Assembly (NCBI RefSeq): GCF_032062105.1
Contig: NW_026930139.1
Span: 930,001-994,000, forward strand
Direction: 5' to 3'
Length of the DNA: 64,000 nt
DNA from: Saccostrea cucullata
Lineage: Eukaryota
Numbering within the stretch: position 1 is the stretch's first letter; each line of letters opens with the position of its first letter. This document shows, in pieces, positions 5,023-19,928 of this stretch. The notes beneath the pieces are model-generated. The model searched no databases and had not been told where the DNA came from. It was given only the letters and a program-made list of their open reading frames with translations. The translations under genes and the position numbers were made by a program.

Positions 5023-6509
5023 TTTAAATATCGAGTGTCACAAAAAATAAAGAACTGTCAAAGGTAAACAAAGGGAAAGAACAAATTAAAACAAGGATAA
5101 AGAACGACTCGGAAGTCTAAAGTTTTTCAGAAAACTTTTAGGGTGTGAATAAAAAGAAATCCTCTTCAGTGAGTCTCTTTTGCTTGATGAGAAATTTTCA
5201 ACTTTCATTGCATCAAAATCACAGAATGCTATATCCTCCATTGATGGCTGAATTATCGATAATCAAAATTAAAACGCGCAAATCACACGATCAAACAGTG
5301 ATAATAATGCTGGAAGTTCTTTCTTTTTCCAACAAACCACAATGTCTGACTCACTAAAACAGAATTCAATCTCGAAAATCTACGTTTTGATCCACTCTCC
5401 TTCTTCTTCCTTGAAAAATTATTTGTAAACTTGACCTACAAAAAAATGCACCCACAATGCAATGCGTTGATTTATATAATCCGTTTCTAAAAAGCGAAAG
5501 CTGACTTTTAACTCTGACGCATGCTTCGACGTGTTTTCCAAATTAGTAAGAATGTATAAAGATTAAATCAACAGATTTCTTTTTTGTTGTTAACACATTT
5601 TTAACATACTTTTTACGCTAATTAAATCCTAACAGCCCGGTGTTTCATAACCATGATAACAGCCCAGTAAACAAGAGTAATATTTACCCTTGGGCTAGAA
5701 AAGTACATATTAATTTTTTACTTTTCTGCAATCATATGTTCATCATGTTCATGTCTGGGATGACAAAACTAATGACAATACAAAAAATAATATTGTAGAA
5801 TGTTTTTTTTATCGCTACTATTCTCCTGCTAAAACATTTTATAGTTCAGTTGTAAATACATGTAGGTAAATCCGTAATCATGGTAACGAAAACTAATTAA
5901 TCAGGACTTCGCGTCAATATCTCTGTTCTGAATTGTTGGTTTTCAAAGCATTTTTTGAGGGACTTAAGCAATTAGACTGGGGGAGGAGGGATGTATAGGC
6001 CACGTACAATACTAGGTCAAAGCACTACAGAGACCCTTATACTAATATTACTGCTATATATCATAGTATATATGTCCCTGGTAATTTTTATTGATCAATG
6101 AAAAATGCACAATTACTAAACGTTGGTGAATTCAGTTCTTTGTATATGCTGTCCTCCTTGACATATTTCATTTACTGATGAAATCTGCAACATGACTAGT
6201 TTTAAGAAAAAGCAGGTTATAGAGGGAGAATAATAATGTGTACCTTTTAAGATATAAAGTAGAAAAAAAAAATCAACCATTGCCAATTTTAACTGACAGT
6301 TAAACACAGATCGAGTTCTTATACACAGACATGGGTTTTAGTATTTTCTATTAGAAAGTTGACGATCAACGTCTTAATTGTTTTTAGAAATAATTGAATC
6401 TGCAATTTGCAATTCCCTCCCGATAATACTACAAACATTACTTACTAGTATTTGGTTCTATTCTTATGCTGCAAAACTGTTTTAGGTTCATTTATCTACT
6501 AATATTAAT

Positions 6510-10470: not shown

Positions 10471-13400
10471 ATGGAGCAATCACCAGCTGAACAGGTGGAT
10501 ACCCACCTGAGTCTTGGACAGCTAAGTGGTAGAGAGATTCTTTGTGTGACTACCTGTGAGATTTATGTTCCTCTCCCCGAGGTGAATCAGGTGGGGCAGG
10601 GGACACTGGAGAAGGTCAGAAAGGGGGACAAGCTTCTCCACCCACACGGAGGTCTGTGTGACTTGTACCTCCTGACTTCTCCTCAAGATTCCAACATAAA
10701 ATCTCTAGCTATGGACTTCTATAGTTCTGAGCAATCGGTACTCTCCCGAAAAAAGGATGCTATTATAAATGTTTTTTGCAAGGATTATTTTTAGCAAAAA
10801 TTTTCTTCATGAACAATTTTTTTTCCAGATTAAACTGTCTATCACATTGAACAACATTACTAAAGATACTCTAAGGGTGTTTATCAGAAGCGACTCATGG
10901 TTTGAGTTCTGGAGTCACCTTGGCAACCGGAATCACAATACAACCATTAAGTTGTGCCAGGATGATGAACACTGGAAAGATTTCTCTTCTCTTCTAAAGG
11001 AACGGGTCAGCTTCCTTAAAGAGTGTTTCAGAACCAAGGGAAATCCTAATCAAGGTGTGTATCGCAAACTCAGGTACATTTCATTGAAGCAGGTCCATCA
11101 TGTAAAAACACAAAAATATATAGTACAAAAAATTAACAGTTATATTTGTAGAAATTTATATTCAGACAAGATAAGTAAAAATTAATTCTAGAATTTTCTA
11201 AGTTTAGTTGGATTGCTTGAATTGCAGAGCATATGTACTACAGGTAATGTTAGGTTACAAAACAAAGACCACCTTATTGTAGTTTGACAAACAGAAGAAT
11301 GATGCATGTAATAAATTCCATGATATTATATAGTCCTTGGCTTATGTGTACTTGGTCACTGAAGTTAAGTGCATTGAACAGCCTTGTAAATAACATTTTG
11401 AATGAAGAAGAGATTTATTAGAGATTCCATGCTTTTAAGAACTGGGAAGTTAATCAAAAATTTAGAATTATGATGTTTTCTTTTGTAGTGTTTGAACTTG
11501 TTGCATTTCAGTCTAAGAGGACTGCAAGCACCAAATCTAAGCAAGAGTTGAATAAAAGTGAACCACCAAAAGAAAAAATACAGGGCACAGATACATCAGA
11601 ATTGGAGGAAAAGGGTGTTATATATAGATTTCAGAAACAGTCCGACAGTGATTTATATCAGAAAGACAAGGAAGATAAAATTCTTCATAGAACACAGTCC
11701 CAGGGGGAAATCCCTGAGAAGGATAGTTCTAATGTTTCACCTCCAAATACTCAAGGAGTTCTAGTCTCTCGTCCAGTAAAGATAAGTGAGTCAGAAACTG
11801 ATGTGTTTGAACCTCCGTTTTCTCCTGCCAATTTTAAATTGATAGACACTAAATCAAAATTATTTGGCAATCTTCTCCTGCAAGAAAATAAAATAGAATC
11901 CAAGAGCAATGATTTAGAATCAACAGTAAAACCAAACAGCGTTGAAGCTGCCAAATATTTGAGTGTTTTTCAGCCTCAGCATGTGCCTTCTCCTCAGTCT
12001 TTGAAGGCTGAGATAGAAAGAGATTCCAGTATTTATGAAAGTGAAAGTGGTGATTATGAAGACATGATGGACCAAGAGAAAGCCATTCAGAGACTAGTAG
12101 AGTTGCTGCAGGCAGCCATTAATTCAAATGATAAAGAGGCTGCAGCAAAGCATGCTGGGAGTTTAGCAGTCAGTGCTGCAAAGGTGACCATTACATTAGA
12201 TAGCAGTAGTCTGAAGAACCCTAAAGACAAAGAGTTCAGGTAACTAGGCAGATTTCTAAGGGCACACTGTAGTACATCCAAAATTATGCTAATGATATAA
12301 ATTTAAAATGTGCATTCTTGTGGAAAAAGGAATTTTTCTATTAACTTGATTAAGGAGACTTGTATATAAAAAAGGCAATGTAATTCAATGCAATTTTAGT
12401 TGTTTTTTTTTTTTTTATATTTCTGTAAAATTCTTTTGCAATTGCTACTGTCGACATTAAAATCATCTTGTTTGTTAAATTCCTTCCTGACTAATGAATT
12501 TGAATTACAATTGAGCTACAGGATAGAAAGGCAATCAAAACATGCTTCTTTAGTTGCTATGATGTAAAATAGTTCTAATATTCTGAATTCGGGAACCTAT
12601 TCTGTATATTAAGTTAAACTATGTTCTGTGAAAAGATGGTTTGATCGATTGTTTCTCAACATCCTCCTATCCAGAGGGTCCACTGAGTTAAAAGAGAAAA
12701 AATTTTACAGTAAAATTTGTCTTATCTGGTCACCAGTGGTTTTAAAGAAAATATTTCACGTACATGCAGTTATTGATAGTGGTAACCTTAACATGGTTGA
12801 CTGTACTGAGATGTGTGCATGCTTCATTTTACAGCATTAAAGTGTACGTAGAAGACAGGGAAGCCTCAGGAGGATGTATAACTCTGAATGTCAAACCCTC
12901 AGACACAGTCAAGGACCTCAAGCTCAGGGTTCGTATTATAAGATTCACTTATGTACTGTTCTTCATTTATTAAACAATTCAAAAACTTTATAGGTACACT
13001 TAAAAAGTCCTTCTCTTTAGCATTTTTTGTTTAAATTTAGGTTTAAAGAACACATACGAAATTGTATTTTTTTTGCATAAAATGCAAATGTGTTTGAATT
13101 ATGATGAATAGTTATTAATTTTTCTTTTTTTTGCAAATTCACAGCTGTAGGATACATTGAAATTATTATTAATTTTTTTTACTGTGAACAGATGTGTTTG
13201 AAGCACAGTTTTCCAATGGAGGTCCAGAAGTGGATCATAGGGAAGCGTATCCCCCCCGACACTGAGACCCTCCAGAAGGCTCGAGTGAGTCAAGGTCAGG
13301 CAGTCTATTTATATCTCATCTCACCCAAGTCTGTGGGACTGACCAAGGAGAAATTTATGGAGGACCGACAAAAAATGCTTCATAACCAGCGTGAGTCTTG

Positions 13401-16400
13401 TTTTGTACAGAACCACGAATATAGTCATGTTTATGTGTACATTAATGTGAGTTATCAAGGTATTTTTACAGTATCCTGTAAACCAACTATCCTTTGCATA
13501 ATCTTTTATTTGCAGCTCATTAATTTGGGATCAATCTTTCATGATAAATTGTAAGGACTGAGGAAGTGTTCTCTTCAAATACAAAGTAAACTCAATACAG
13601 TGTAGTTTGTGATGTTTAATATTCCTGAGTCAAAGTAGGTCGTGAAAACTGGCGGATATTTCTCGCATGCAAATAAAAGATGATTTACAGTATTTTGCAA
13701 GTATTTGACTGAAGAATTATCTTACTTTTTCTGATTTCATTGACAAATTTTCAATGCTCGTAACATAAATGTACATGTATGTGGCAAGTTTTTAATTTTT
13801 TTTGTTTTTTCAGCTCCAAATGTTCAGTATCAAAAGCAGGGACCCACAAACTTTGCTGAGAGTGGATGTAAGAATACATATATAGAATATTAGATATTTT
13901 ATCCTTGGATATGAATATTTTTCGGGAATGAGACAAGATTTGTAAATTATTCGTAAGTGCAAAAAACATACATGTAGTTTCAAAAATAAAATAAATTCCC
14001 TATCCAACTGTAGAATATCTTTTTATTTCATTTTTTTTTTACTTTCCTTAAGTATTACAGTTGAGAGATGCTATAGCTAAGCTGTTGCTAGATTGAACAT
14101 TTTAAAATTAAAACAGATATTAAAATCAATTCTGAGAACTTTGGCAATTTTAGACCATGTGAGAATTGTTATTTACTGCTGTGAAGTGCTGTCTTAAAAC
14201 GAAGTATTTTCTTTCTAGCAGTCTTAATTACAAAATCTCAAGTATTTATTTGGGCCTCTTTTCATGTTTCAAGTGCCCAATAGTATTCTCTGGTCTATCT
14301 GTGAAAACTTTATATGACCATACAGGTTTATATTATTACATGGTTAAAAGACAGAGGAAGATAACCATAGATTTTTTTTTTAAAAAGTCACTTCTTGAAA
14401 TGGTAAAAGCTTGTAATTAATTACATGTATATGACCAATATTGACCATTGTGATGCAATAAGTGAAGCATTTTGAAATTATACAGATAAAACCATATTAA
14501 GGGATCCTGTATGAATGTCTTAATTCTTTAATTATATATGTAAGACTCCAAAGTCCGATGGTGACACCAAAGTCCGATGGTCTCGCCAAACCCCGATGGT
14601 CTGTGCCAAATCCCGATGGTTTGTTGTCGGTACGGATGCCAAAGTCCGATGGCTCGTTTCCTATGAGACACGTTGCGCTAAAGTGCGATGGTCTGACATG
14701 CCAAAGTCCGATGGTGTGGAGAAACAATTAACGTTTATGACGTCACAATAATTGGATGTCATTCACTGATGCCGTTGTCCTGCATTCAAAAGCCAAATTT
14801 TCTGAATTGGTCCTCGCATACAATTTTACTGATTTTGCTTATTGCTTGCACCTTCCAAAGATATTAAGGTTAGTTCTTGCACACCACTCGACTGATTAGG
14901 GATAGTCTTTGCTTCGCACTATCCCGAGAGATTAAGGGTTAGCCTTTGCACACTAGTCGAGTGATTAAGTTTAGTCTTGCATCCACCCAAGATATCTAGG
15001 TTATAGTTGTTACACACTTTTTGAACGATTAGGATTAGTTTTGCGCGTATCTGAGAGATTAGGGTTAGTTTTCACATTATGATACTTATTTATTTAAAAC
15101 CTTGGCCTGGCGCGGCGTTGAGGTTTGGCGCAGTAGTACTATGACGTCATAAACGTTAATTGTTTTCCACAAAATCGGATTTTGGCGTGTCAAACCATCG
15201 GGGATTGGCGTGTCAGACCATCGGACTTTGGCGTGACCATCGGACTTTGGAGTCCCATCACACTTTGGAGTCCTTTTTATCTAAGTTAAAATTGCCCCTA
15301 ATGCAAAAAACAAAAACAAAATCAAAGTTTCATAACCCCCAATGTAAAAAAAAAGTTTGTTTTATGTACAGCTTACATTCCAATGGGTACCCCTGTGACT
15401 CCTCAGACCCCCCACAGTGCCCTACCCCCCTCCGGACAGAGATCTGAGCCTTACAGCAGCAGTTCTACAGGGGGAGGCCTGACCCCCAACCCTTGCCAGC
15501 AGGGTCAGATACAGCAGCAGAAGTCCAGGGATGGTGCCGGTAAACCGAAGGCCTCTCCCCAGGTCATCAGGGAGGGGTCAGTAGAGGGGTTTGAAGTGAT
15601 TCCACCCACAGCTGTCCTGAGGGGAATCCCCCAACCTCAAAACAAACAGGAGACCAAAATTCAGGTAATTCCAGTATCAAGCACTAGGAAAGACATTCAC
15701 TAAATAATATTTTCATATTGTTTAATATGGCTGTACGTTTAAAAATAAATACCGAATAATTCATTGTACTGATCATGGCTTTTCATTTTGTTTTGGAAAA
15801 TCAAGCTCAATTTTGAGTGAGGCATTTTCTTCAACTGGACTAAATATTTCCCAGTGTTTTTCTTTAAGTATTACTTCCAAATATGTTTAGGAAGCATATA
15901 TTACAAAACATTCCTTCGATAACTTAGGTTTCATTATGAATTGAATTTTATAAACAAATGCTAAAAGAAAATAAAGTCAGTTCAATTTATCAAATTTTGA
16001 GGTCTTTGAAAGTTCATCATAAAAGATGTAAATATCATTATATCTAACCACAACGGGACTCAAAATCAGTTCGCTATATCCGTAAATTTGTTATATCAGA
16101 GTTCATTATAACCGTAAAAATAAAAAGTTACAAAGATTTGTAAAGAATTATGCCGGGGACCCAGAAAAACTTCGCTATATCTGTGAATTCGCTTTATCCG
16201 TGTTCGTACTAAACAAGTTTTACTGTAGTGTATTTTATAATGAATGAAAAGGCTCATGCATTTATGCAGTCAACAAGTTTAAAGAACTTCTTGCTGCTTT
16301 GAATTATATGTGTACATAACTATTTGTCATAACCATTTTTTTCCTTTCTAAATTAGGCTGGCTGGGTTTGCCCTGCCTGTACTTATATTAACCAGCCAAC

Positions 16401-19400
16401 ACGGCCAGGTTGTGAGATTTGTGCCACAAACCGACCACTGGACTATCAAGTGCCTGAAGGATACAGAATGACCAAAGAAGAGGAGGAGAGGATCCAGAGG
16501 GAGCGTGAGCAGGAAGAACAAACTCAAAGGGTAGGTTTTAAAGAAAGGGTGTAATTATATACAGGGTAGTTAAACTCATGAATTCTTAATTTCAGGTACA
16601 TTGTATATGTTACAAGATTATCTTTAATGCATGAATTATATTCAGATGTTTATCTGGGACAGCCCGTAACACAGAATACATACAAATGCAGACTGACACA
16701 TCACATAGATGATCTGTATTTTTTGTAATTTGCTGAAAATACATGAAATTATTAAAGGAATTGGCCCATTTTTTTCTGTGTCATTTCTGCATCATGCAGT
16801 AATTATACACCTTGTTCAGGCTTTTCTCTTTGACACTTTTCCAGGCCAGCGTGAACAGAGGTCAGGAGAGGGGTCCAAGAGAAAATACTGACGAGGAGTA
16901 TTATGGTGACCTTGAGGAGCGAGACCTGGCAGCCATCTTGGAATTGAATGAAAACTTAAACAGGGCCAGAATTAGGTCCCCTACAGAGAATGCCCTCACC
17001 CCACCCCATGGGCCACCCCCTGACCCTCATTTGATGGACCTTGGAAATGTCCATAGAGGATCAATGGACAATTTACAGTTTCCTCTGGACAATAGACATA
17101 TAGACTGGAATGAAGAACATATATAAAATAATATACATGTCTAGGATGGAGGGGGAATATGAGGAAATTAATTTCATATTTCAATATCAGTCATTTGAAT
17201 TGCAGTTTGAATGAAATCATTAACACAAAGTTACAGTTATACAAGTATTCACATGTATGTTCTGTGTTTTATGAATTATGTAATTATGTATTAGTATCTT
17301 CAAAAATGTTTTTGTCAAAGCAAAGATCTACAAGGGAACAATAAAATCTTATTCTATGTAAGTGTCATATTTTTGAAAATAGAAATACCATAAGAGAAAA
17401 TATACCTAGGGAATTGAAACCCATGTACAGTATACCACCTATCCAAAAAGAGTTGAATTTCAACAGATACCGGTAACTGTAACAAGTATTTCCACTGATT
17501 CAGAATCTAAAAGATGGTAAGACATTTATTTGGTGGAATGTCACATATTGAAGAGGATGTTCTGTACATTAGATCCATATAGAAAACAAGATGTGTTTGT
17601 GAAACACTGATGCACCCATAAGGCAGCTTATGCTGAGGTTTGAATCTTCTCTGTAAAATATGAAAGGCAGTCCTAGTTCTAACTGTTCAAAAGTTGTGGC
17701 CAAAATTAAAGTTTTTAAAAAGTGGGTCAAACTCTAATGTCAAGGTCAAAATATTTATACCCACTGAAAGGCCTTGTCACAATGAATATACATTAGAAGT
17801 ATGAAAGCCCTTGCTCCAGCTGTTTAAAAGTTATGACCAAGATTAAAGTGTGGTATTTTTTGTAAAAGAATGTCAGACTCCAAGGTCAAGAGGTCAAATT
17901 TGGTGGTACCCAAAGCAAGGTCTTGTAACAAGGAAAAATACCTGTGAAATATAGCCCACTCACTTAAAAGTTGTGGGCAAGGTGAAAGTATTTGCAGACA
18001 AGCAAACAGCTAGACAGACATGGACAGACAGACAGGGCAAAAACTATATAAAAACTACATGTATAACAAGTCCAATGACTGTTCTACTGTGCATGCAATG
18101 TACATGTATTATTTCTGATTTAACTGAAACAAATCCCACTCTCTTCCTTATAATCAAGTTTTACTGTAAATTCTTTGTTTTATTCCTGATTTAATTGAAA
18201 CAAATCCCACTTTCTTCCTTATAATCAAGTTTTACTGTAAATTGTTTGTATTACATGTATTCCTGATTTACCTGAACAAGTCCCCATGTATTCTTTATAA
18301 CCAGATTTTACTGTACATTGTACATACAGTATTATTTCTGATGTAGCTGGAACAGGAGCGAGAGGACCTGGAGAGGAGGCTCAGACAGGAGAATTTTGAG
18401 ATTTTGATGAAAGCTGAGGACAGCAGTCTGATTGGTAACTCTCAATCCTTCCAGTGTCCCATCTGTTTTGATGACATCTCACCAGGAAATGGGGTCATTC
18501 TCAGGGAATGTCTTCACACATTCTGCAGGTAAAATACTCCTCACATTAGGTTTGAGAAACAGCCATTAAGTCCCACAATTTTTTCACTGACTAAGGAATA
18601 AATTTCTATATTCCGGTTTTATAGATGGCACAGTCTTTGATCGTATATTTTGATGAGGTTTCAACAGGGAGATTTTTTAGTGTATTTTACGAGGTTTCTA
18701 TTTTTGGTGATACAGGGATATTTTTTACCGTAATCTGACAAGGTTTCTATTTTTACAGGGACTGCCTACAGGGGGCGGTGGTACACAGTGAGGAGGCAGA
18801 TCTCCGCTGTCCGTATCAGGATGACCACTACGCTTGTAATGCCTCCCTTCAGGATAGAGAAATTAAAGCGGTCAGTATATCTGTTAAAAAATTTACTTTA
18901 TACAGTTACCTGTATAATTAAATTACCATTAAAATGATTGAATGCATTGCCTTATAGATCATAATAAACAAAAAAAAGGCTGTAAATAAATAAAACTCTA
19001 AAGCTTTGATGAGTAGTGTGTGGCTAAATGAAATGATGGAAATTACAATGTACACATTTCTATGCAATGACACTGTGAACATAAATATTTTTGTGTTATT
19101 GTCATTTGACCTTGACAGCTGGTGGAGGCCAGTGTGTACGAGAAGCACCTCCAGCGGAGCCTAGTAACGGCCGAGAGTCAGGAACAGAACAGTTTCCACT
19201 GTAAAACTAACGACTGTCCTGGCTGGTGTATCTACGAGGACCTCGTCAACTTCTTCAAGTGCCCGGTCTGTAACAAGGAGAACTGCCTGACCTGTAAGGC
19301 GATACATGAGGGCATGAACTGTAAGGAATACCAGGAGGACCTGAGGATCCGATCCTCCAACGACAAGGCCGCCAAGCAAACCAATAAAATGCTCAAGGTA

Positions 19401-19928
19401 ACCACAGCACTCTGTCTTCTGTTTGTGATGTCATTCAATTCTTGGTAAATAATGCATTAAACAGTCCCCGGTTGTAGAAATAATAAAACATATTTTATAA
19501 CATATGCTCATCATATATGGTGTATTTTCTAGGCCCTTTGTAAAAAAAGGTTAAAAAGCTACAGTTTACCATGATTCTTTTTTAGGATCTGCTGAAGAAA
19601 GGAGATGCCATGAAGTGTCCTAAGTGTGAAGTGGTGGTACAGAAAAAGGATGGGTGTGACTGGATAAAATGCTCCATCTGTAAAACAGAAATCTGCTGGG
19701 TCACTAAGGGGCCAAGATGGGGACCTCTGGTAAACATCCTACGTTGTTATAGCATATTTAAAATTCTTTGTTAAAGTTTCAGACTTCTCTGATAATAGAA
19801 TATAAAATTATTGAATCTGTTACAAAATACATGTACCGGTATTTATGATGAAAAAAATTGTTTACTGTAGGGTGTCCGATATTAGTGGTGGAAATCTGTG
19901 CCATGAGAACTGTAACAATTGTCATTAG
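10471..19928 (+). CDS. RBCK1: HOIL-1/RBCK1-like RBR E3 ligase with SHARPIN-like N-terminus (PH-like, LTM, UBL, NZF, RING1, IBR, RING2)
   Basis: Exons 10471-10737, 10829-11054, 11489-12239 (this junction less certain), 12835-12928, 13192-13390, 13814-13867, 15372-15664, 16357-16530, 18347-18528, 18759-18870, 19119-19397, 19586-19729, 19871-~19928. Motifs: LTM ([25 protein letters not shown]), UBL ([31 protein letters not shown]), NZF ([21 protein letters not shown]), RING1 ([18 protein letters not shown]), IBR ([31 protein letters not shown]), RING2 ([37 protein letters not shown]), C-terminal CHENCNNCH*. The last exon is out of frame as given. Confidence 0.93.
13476..13690. mobile_element. 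Small MITE with CTGTAAA...TTTACAG termini
   Basis: Imperfect short TIRs, right end followed by TA. Resembles 40322-40529. Confidence 0.45.
14544..15254. mobile_element. Foldback-like non-autonomous element with modular long inverted repeats
   Basis: Left arm has tandem ccaaagtccgatggt units ending in aaacaattaacgtttatgacgtca. The right arm is the inverted equivalent. An internal degenerate array of about 40 bp (gattaaggttag..ttgca) spans about 14840-15075. Confidence 0.75.
16845..17126 (+). CDS. Putative alternative terminal exon giving an RBR-less, SHARPIN-like isoform
   Basis: Strong acceptor (cttttctctttgacacttttccag), phase 0 like the NZF-exon donor. 93 open codons to a stop, no convincing in-phase donor, and AATAAA at 17340-17345. 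Confidence 0.65.
   Translation, partial: ASVNRGQERGPRENTDEEYYGDLEERDLAAILELNENLNRARIRSPTENALTPPHGPPPDPHLMDLGNVHRGSMDNLQFPLDNRHIDWNEEHI
17586..18048 (+). mobile_element. Pearl/CvA-like element
   Basis: Head aacaagatgtgtttgtgaaacac, 2-3 degenerate core repeats (gtcaaggtca, aaagttatg), GACA microsatellite and tail. Confidence 0.7.
18108..18356 (+). repeat. Degenerate tandem repeat (about 70-80 bp) spanning the RING1-exon acceptor
   Basis: Three units of tatt(t/c)ctgattta(a/c)(c/t)tgaa(a)caa.tcccact...ttttactgta lead into tatttctgatgtag|ctggaacag. Confidence 0.7.

Follow-up and report, generated by a model that had tools for sequence, protein, structure and literature searches.

The mammalian linear ubiquitin chain assembly complex, called LUBAC, contains two similar accessory subunits, HOIL-1L (RBCK1) and SHARPIN, whose LUBAC-tethering motifs (LTMs) fold as one domain of pseudo-2-fold symmetry and whose ubiquitin-like domains (UBLs) bind opposite ends of the UBA region of HOIP (PMC6044281). 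An RBR-less splice variant of mouse and rat HOIL-1L that keeps the UBL has been described as HOIL-N or RBCK2 (PMC6044281). For Aplysia, the accessible text of one report states that there is no Sharpin gene and proposes, in one sentence, the TRIAD/RBR-less HOIL1 isoform XP_035825204.1 as a functional analog of Sharpin (PMC9334734); the core idea of the present study is already published for that animal. In the literature we found, mostly from outside subscription journals, it is unsettled what use LUBAC has for two similar accessory subunits and how SHARPIN originated, and none of it deals with the conserved terminal exon and its selection, with the parallel in corals or with the link to MAF1 described here. 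We analyzed a 64,000-nucleotide stretch of the oyster Saccostrea cucullata genome (contig NW_026930139.1, positions 930,001 to 994,000; hereafter the window). In it lies a single, unduplicated mollusc gene that corresponds to both RBCK1 (HOIL-1L) and SHARPIN of vertebrates and has an RBR-bearing long and an RBR-less short product.

An alternative last exon in the oyster gene

Eight coding exons (10471-16530, 686 codons) are common to both isoforms and are followed by two phase-0 continuations. RefSeq carries the window gene's sequence as XP_062621424.1 and has XP_062592562-4 on a second haplotype, contig C21937. The window DNA contains no N. Searches used one exon of the window gene at a time, the spliced model being joined solely for the frame check; full-length queries were database proteins and not this model. 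The layout of the gene is as follows:

10471-10737 (+): coding exon 1, first half of the predicted PH-fold domain; N-terminus agrees with RefSeq models
10829-11054 (+): coding exon 2, second half of the predicted PH-fold domain
11489-12239 (+): coding exon 3, long linker, then candidate LTM (~12106-12207); Pfam LTM below cut-off, 5y3t match
12835-12928 (+): coding exon 4, first part of UBL
13192-13390 (+): coding exon 5, second part of UBL; solved-structure matches
13814-13867 (+): coding exon 6, linker; keeps the frame and is in RefSeq models
15372-15664 (+): coding exon 7, Pro/Gln-rich linker; covered by contigs, joined to exon 8 in 4/4 runs
16357-16530 (+): coding exon 8, NZF with HOIL-1L-type tail helix and the shared phase-0 donor; Pfam Zn_ribbon_RanBP over cut-off, 3b08 match, contig branch point
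16822-16844 (+): 23-nt acceptor tract ahead of the alternative last exon; cross-oyster identity
16845-17126 (+): alternative terminal coding exon, acidic, 93 codons and stop; Leu-rich helix-like motif at ~16911-16958
17127-17381 (+): short-isoform 3′ untranslated region (UTR), containing AATAAA (17340-17345); its end is placed roughly, where one contig of the relative stops (17381)
18347-18528 (+): exon 9, long isoform, linker helix and first half of RING1
18759-18870 (+): exon 10, second half of RING1
19119-19397 (+): exon 11, IBR; Pfam IBR over cut-off
19586-19729 (+): exon 12, RING2 with GCDW catalytic motif
19871-19928 (+): final long-isoform exon; carries a frameshift and is shorter in the window contig, intact on C21937
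20007-20611 (+): 55-bp tandem array, 11 copies, with last codons, stop and start of the long-isoform 3′ UTR

The NZF exon ends in phase 0, and the acceptors at 16845 and 18347 are both in phase 0. The two in-frame partners that the initial annotation gave the donor at 16530 were borne out by the frame check and by contigs that branch at this position. Its description of exon 16845-17126 also agreed with the re-read sequence: a good acceptor, 93 open codons closed by TAA, AATAAA at 17340 and no good in-phase donor, none of the phase-0 donors within the exon scoring above −4 bits. The short model has 779 aa and one stop. Simulated introns reach 93 open codons after an AG in 19% of cases, so the sequence alone proved nothing about this exon, and chance open sequence or splicing noise had to be weighed as its explanation.

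As no run from S. cucullata itself turned up, transcript data came as contigs from four runs of four studies (one recorded as RNA, two guessed to be RNA and one of unknown kind) of a close relative that is ~96% identical in exons. The predicted joint 16530>16845 (GT..AG) was present in 4/4 runs. In two of them, X4 and X7, the contig from upstream breaks off at 16530 and is continued by two contigs, of the new exon and of the RING1 exon respectively; contig depth was 29.4/29.0 over the former and 30.8/19.7 over the latter. Because such depth cannot measure expression, our conclusion is limited to both isoforms being common in transcript assemblies. The intron bin 16562-16715 was empty of contigs. 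The 16530>18347 joint was absent among the joints listed; we infer it from RING1 contigs with an identical 29-letter overhang and from long RefSeq models in which both exons are joined. Nor did the joints listed, which leave out another 90, include one leading from the new exon to RING1. A cassette exon that splices on to RING1 was ruled out by this result, by the lack of a usable in-frame donor and by database models that end at one and the same residue. One contig of the relative crosses the short-isoform UTR as far as 17381, in agreement with the AATAAA, although contigs cannot fix an RNA end. An indel lies in this UTR, with 44 nt at 17126-17170 in the window versus ~490 nt in the relative.

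Coding constraint was evident as well. Between window and relative, the exon has seven substitutions, 7/7 in the third position of a codon and 6/7 synonymous (p ~5e-4), and the ratio of nonsynonymous to synonymous substitution rates (dN/dS) against three other oysters was 0.15, 0.15 and 0.20; the exon is under purifying selection. Over the 23-nt acceptor tract, the window and two other oysters do not differ. RefSeq lists the 779-aa form, with four differences, as XP_062592564.1, 'uncharacterized protein isoform X3', on the other haplotype. With the junction in four studies, codon-level selection, and position and phase kept in abalone (see below), the chance-exon explanation, vanishingly improbable in our view, is already refuted: 16845-17126 is a real alternative last exon. 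Its conservation extends far beyond bivalves. After the NZF exon, the transcript either takes up this conserved exon, giving a ligase-free 779-aa chain with the predicted layout PH-fold-LTM-UBL-NZF-acidic tail, or skips it and proceeds to RING1-IBR-RING2.

For the long isoform, the acceptor at 18347 had been annotated as leading to a full RBR. This is correct for the species, in which the intact haplotype C21937 encodes 951 aa, but not for the window contig, where the last RBR exon lacks 2 + 21 nt relative to C21937 and a stop falls at codon 930. The frame implied by the annotated end at 19928 differs from the actual reading frame in this contig, and the RefSeq model for the contig ends early, at 926 aa. 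The array of 55-bp units holding the C-terminal codons and stop borders the broken exon and is present on both haplotypes, while the frameshift is confined to the window contig; it may represent a broken allele or an assembly error. We considered C21937 as a second paralogue and rejected this on the basis of 98.3% identity over 11.6 kb and a MAF1 neighbour in common, which identify it as a haplotype.

Tandem repetition of the gene's 3′ end also occurs in Pinctada (three last-exon copies, L070:26990-27370), and the end of the RING2 exon is repeated four times in Haliotis (L042:43005-43298). Within the oyster gene, intron 6 contains an element resembling a miniature inverted-repeat transposable element, with inverted ends and short internal repeats (14544-15273). 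Introns 7 and 8 hold high-copy repeats at 15950-16230 and 17560-18050, where many unrelated contigs stack.

Domain types of the two isoforms

The UBL matched the solved HOIL-1L UBL at E 7e-7 and that of SHARPIN at E 0.018, and the LTM-UBL unit scored 53.6 bits against the HOIL-1L chain of 5y3t versus 28.6 bits against its SHARPIN chain. The LTM segment reached 15.9 bits with the Pfam model (cut-off 27.5); the 5y3t matches span it, and the Pfam family is found in two mollusc orthologues. The NZF matched 3b08 across both NZF and tail, and the HOIL-1L tail helix is kept. In HOIL-1L, the NZF tail confers linear-chain preference; the helix is absent from fish SHARPIN. On haplotype C21937, the long isoform has RING1-IBR-RING2 with the catalytic Cys and a Cys/His C-terminus, and the Magallana long form matched the HOIL-1L RBR at E 4e-107. 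The short isoform, without RBR, ends in the tailed NZF and a 93-aa acidic tail, not in a tail-less NZF near the C-terminus.

The N-terminal domain gave no match to Pfam Sharpin_PH (PF16764). Its predicted model, of low confidence (predicted local distance difference test 49), matched mostly PH, EVH1, RanBD and PTB structures at Z ~5, with SHARPIN not listed, and its profile matched fish SHARPIN PH weakly (E 8e-4, probability 25%). A weak WH1 match was obtained for the N-terminus of a coral orthologue, and an Atlas search returned WH1, EVH1 and PH leads, all below 0.9, for the N-terminal domain and none for the tail. From these predictions, the domain looks PH-fold. An inner donor after 10494 in coding exon 1 yields RefSeq isoform X2, which lacks the first half of this domain and has an X2 equivalent in M. 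gigas; PH-less long forms, nearer HOIL-1L architecture, may be made via this donor.

The SHARPIN architecture first assigned to the short form stands as regards domain order and the missing RBR. It does not extend to the UBL and NZF tail, which are of HOIL-1L type, to the N-terminal domain, which the Sharpin_PH model missed, or to the C-terminus, where 93 aa are added. Given its HOIL-1L-type LTM-UBL and tailed NZF, the short form is not SHARPIN by membership; its sequence reads as that of an RBR-less HOIL-1 with a PH-fold head, SHARPIN-like in domain order without being a SHARPIN family member in the strict sense. A tree of the LTM-UBL-NZF region, built without vertebrate RBCK1 and without a root, was unresolved.

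Genomic setting, distribution and history

The separate SHARPIN gene for which the initial annotation advised a search was not found in an exon-wise search of the oyster genome, nor was another LTM-UBL-NZF locus. IBR matches were restricted to the window locus and its haplotype, and a fish SHARPIN query had the window gene as its best genome match. Genome scans with the Pfam Sharpin_PH and LTM models were blank, the window gene itself included. Other NZF matches were rejected as family members, lying in GTPase-like or unrelated loci. In several copies (L023, L024, L026; C18140 and C19241 of G000), NZF-like zinc-finger exons stand directly upstream of GIMAP/AIG1-like GTPase exons.

MAF1 starts 5.4 kb upstream of the oyster gene on the opposite strand, and is likewise a neighbour on C21937:

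4941-5022 (−): first coding exon of MAF1, divergent from the oyster gene; ATG at ~5021
1828-1986, 1398-1529 and 1093-1221 (−): further MAF1 exons; Pfam Maf1 over cut-off

In mouse, Maf1 is situated 5′ of Sharpin (PMC7371178). MAF1 adjacency together with the RBR places the ligase of RBCK1 at the genomic address of SHARPIN. Within 10 kb upstream, MAF1 was absent from Haliotis, Potamilus, partial Pinctada and fish loci, which is uninformative given the long introns. A candidate plus-strand donor near 5546 could mark a non-coding first exon at a promoter shared with MAF1. Elsewhere in the window lie exons of a PH/SH3 adaptor-like gene (23203-24578, minus strand) and an intronless Rho-like GTPase open reading frame (29321-29962, minus strand). 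Fish genes labelled RBCK1 in databases (P0097, P0099; L038) are SHARPIN by their domains and their GPAA1 and RNase-PH neighbours.

Short isoforms or models were found in Saccostrea, Ostrea, Magallana, Pinctada, Potamilus, Dreissena, Nucella and others, including RefSeq equivalents in S. echinata, O. edulis and M. gigas and, in Dreissena, a RefSeq short X4 alongside long X1-X3. The terminal segment of RBR-less forms from Pinctada, Potamilus, Dreissena, Nucella and further transcript contigs contains a Leu-rich motif, approximately L-x-E-x-x-L-x-x-L-L-x-F-N-D-A-L, for which fish SHARPIN and the libraries searched offered no counterpart. A single Pinctada contig, annotated as two genes, carries the NZF exon, terminal exon and RING1 exon in the order and phase of the oyster. 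The database model of the Haliotis gene is the long form; its NZF-RING1 intron contains an unannotated 91-codon phase-0 exon with stop that was the sole match of a bivalve-only motif model (E 7e-4 in 53.7 kb). Present in bivalves and in Haliotis, the exon predates the bivalve-gastropod split. The motif has diverged in oysters: since a model made without them ranked the oyster exon third (E 0.43) and failed to single it out, the case for homology with the other molluscs is built on its position and phase and on the Pinctada intermediate. When a possible origin of the tail by duplication of the first helix of the RING1 exon was examined, linker windows ranked 2-10.

A parallel occurs outside molluscs. 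Transcript protein P0096 comprises a WH1-like domain, an LTM-like segment, UBL and tailed NZF; after these come 18 codons and then a long UTR, without an RBR. The genomic contig L054 has a homologous 18-codon exon and conserved UTR 1.46 kb past the NZF donor, the contigs ending too early to reveal any RBR exons beyond it. As they group with L046 from the Cyphastrea coral metagenome Ga0126343, both sequences probably derive from corals. No motif exon was seen in loci that, by their sample identifiers, we take to be from termites and marine worms; the termite-like NZF-RING1 intron measures ~190 nt, with ~47 nt at one locus and none at another.

These distributions bear on two histories. Tentatively, and as a possibility rather than a probability, the cnidarian-bilaterian ancestor could have built LUBAC from two genes, HOIP and one MAF1-linked accessory gene, whose last-exon choice gave ligase-bearing and ligase-free chains and a symmetric LTM dimer. 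RBCK1 and SHARPIN would then be isoforms fixed in duplicates, and molluscs would still tune linear ubiquitination in this way. Against a universal exon stand the termite- and worm-like loci. These loci, with their short or missing introns, also speak for a second history, credible to us if somewhat short of even, in which molluscs and corals acquired their short terminal exons independently and plain RBR loss after duplication gave vertebrate SHARPIN, with no ancestral two-isoform gene. Similarity among the mollusc, coral and fish-SHARPIN terminal exons was not detectable, as separate origins would have it; however, short terminal exons diverge fast, all three follow a phase-0 intron after the NZF exon, and MAF1 adjacency places the unduplicated gene at the SHARPIN position.

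Possible LUBAC role and comparison with known systems

That one gene gives RBR-less and RBR-bearing products with two real 3′ ends, as initially annotated, is upheld by contigs and RefSeq models, and the genome contains a HOIP with UBA and LDD. This oyster HOIP, on C22155, scored 73.7 bits with UBA_HOIP and has an RBR and the LDD family over cut-off; an OTULIN-family gene is also present. Both isoforms carry the same LTM-like segment and the same UBL, so that two copies could co-fold into a tethering domain, which would be a symmetric LTM dimer given that both chains are products of a single gene. Their UBLs would dock on the UBA region of oyster HOIP, the first part of which weakly matches 5y3t_B. 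Long/short, long/long or short/short pairs could form, the short form filling the ligase-free accessory slot of mammalian SHARPIN. By this analysis, paired isoforms probably act on HOIP, with the short form working like SHARPIN. In mice, loss of HOIL-1L ligase raises LUBAC output (PMC10967397), from which more short form should mean more linear chains.

Several points weigh against this role. Exon-wise genome searches, which overlooked the LTM and PH of this very gene, could also overlook a SHARPIN that has diverged strongly. The UBA_HOIP match covers positions 12-112 of 152, and the second UBA module of oyster HOIP, on the next exon, had no solved-structure match. With a UBL and NZF of HOIL-1L type, the short form may not supply the SHARPIN-specific contribution, and the conservation of its tail motif suggests a partner not shared by SHARPIN. 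Drosophila LUBEL functions without accessory subunits (PMC5090701).

The second UBA module, lacking a confirmed match, would suit a short form that is a HOIL-N/RBCK2-like truncated HOIL-1, serving as competitor or decoy at HOIP's HOIL-1 site or as linear-chain binder in a mollusc LUBAC of roughly HOIP plus one accessory subunit. Its UBL and tailed NZF of HOIL-1L type and the mouse HOIL-N precedent fit this too. We nevertheless consider it unlikely: the LTM-like segment is kept, the known role of the LTM is to pair two accessory chains, the partner must come from the same gene, and both mollusc forms are common in assemblies, whereas HOIL-N is minor. The tail motif, kept across bivalves and gastropods and without counterpart in fish SHARPIN or the libraries searched, could instead mean that the short form is a ubiquitin-binding adaptor that acts for the most part apart from LUBAC and uses its tail helix to bind a partner specific to molluscs. 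This seems improbable for a protein that carries the LTM-like segment and UBL intact, and the short form could have both a LUBAC role and a tail partner.

A gene making both forms is a natural minimal system, from which one would predict that the pseudo-symmetric tethering domain of mammals goes back to a homodimeric one; it lets the ligase-free slot be studied with identical UBL and LTM. It also suggests that oysters and other molluscs may control NF-kB signalling through splicing or polyadenylation. For annotation, short forms filed as uncharacterized proteins and the split Pinctada gene call for correction.

Among known systems, vertebrate HOIL-1L/RBCK1 has the order LTM-UBL-tailed NZF-RING1-IBR-RING2, followed by the oyster long form with an LTM-like segment ahead of the UBL. 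The mollusc protein differs in its long linkers, its N-terminal domain of predicted PH fold and a major isoform that lacks the RBR and ends in a dedicated terminal exon. Vertebrate SHARPIN resembles the short form in its PH-LTM-UBL-NZF order, its lack of an RBR and, in mouse, MAF1 on its 5′ side; fish SHARPIN, as in the oyster, has a phase-0 intron after the NZF exon and then a short last exon. Fish additionally possess a PH-plus-RBR paralogue, shrprbck1r. Unlike the oyster form, SHARPIN is a separate gene without NZF tail helix or 93-aa acidic tail, while the oyster protein misses the Sharpin_PH model and has a UBL nearer that of HOIL-1L. HOIL-N/RBCK2 (~30 kDa) occurs in small amounts alongside a separate SHARPIN, whereas the mollusc form is common and ends in a long-conserved dedicated exon. 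The Aplysia proposal is based on domain annotation, its accessible text containing no analysis of exon structure, RNA junctions, conservation, selection or synteny (PMC9334734). Drosophila LUBEL, finally, is an invertebrate HOIP orthologue that makes linear chains with no accessory subunit (PMC5090701), whereas the oyster keeps one accessory gene with two products.

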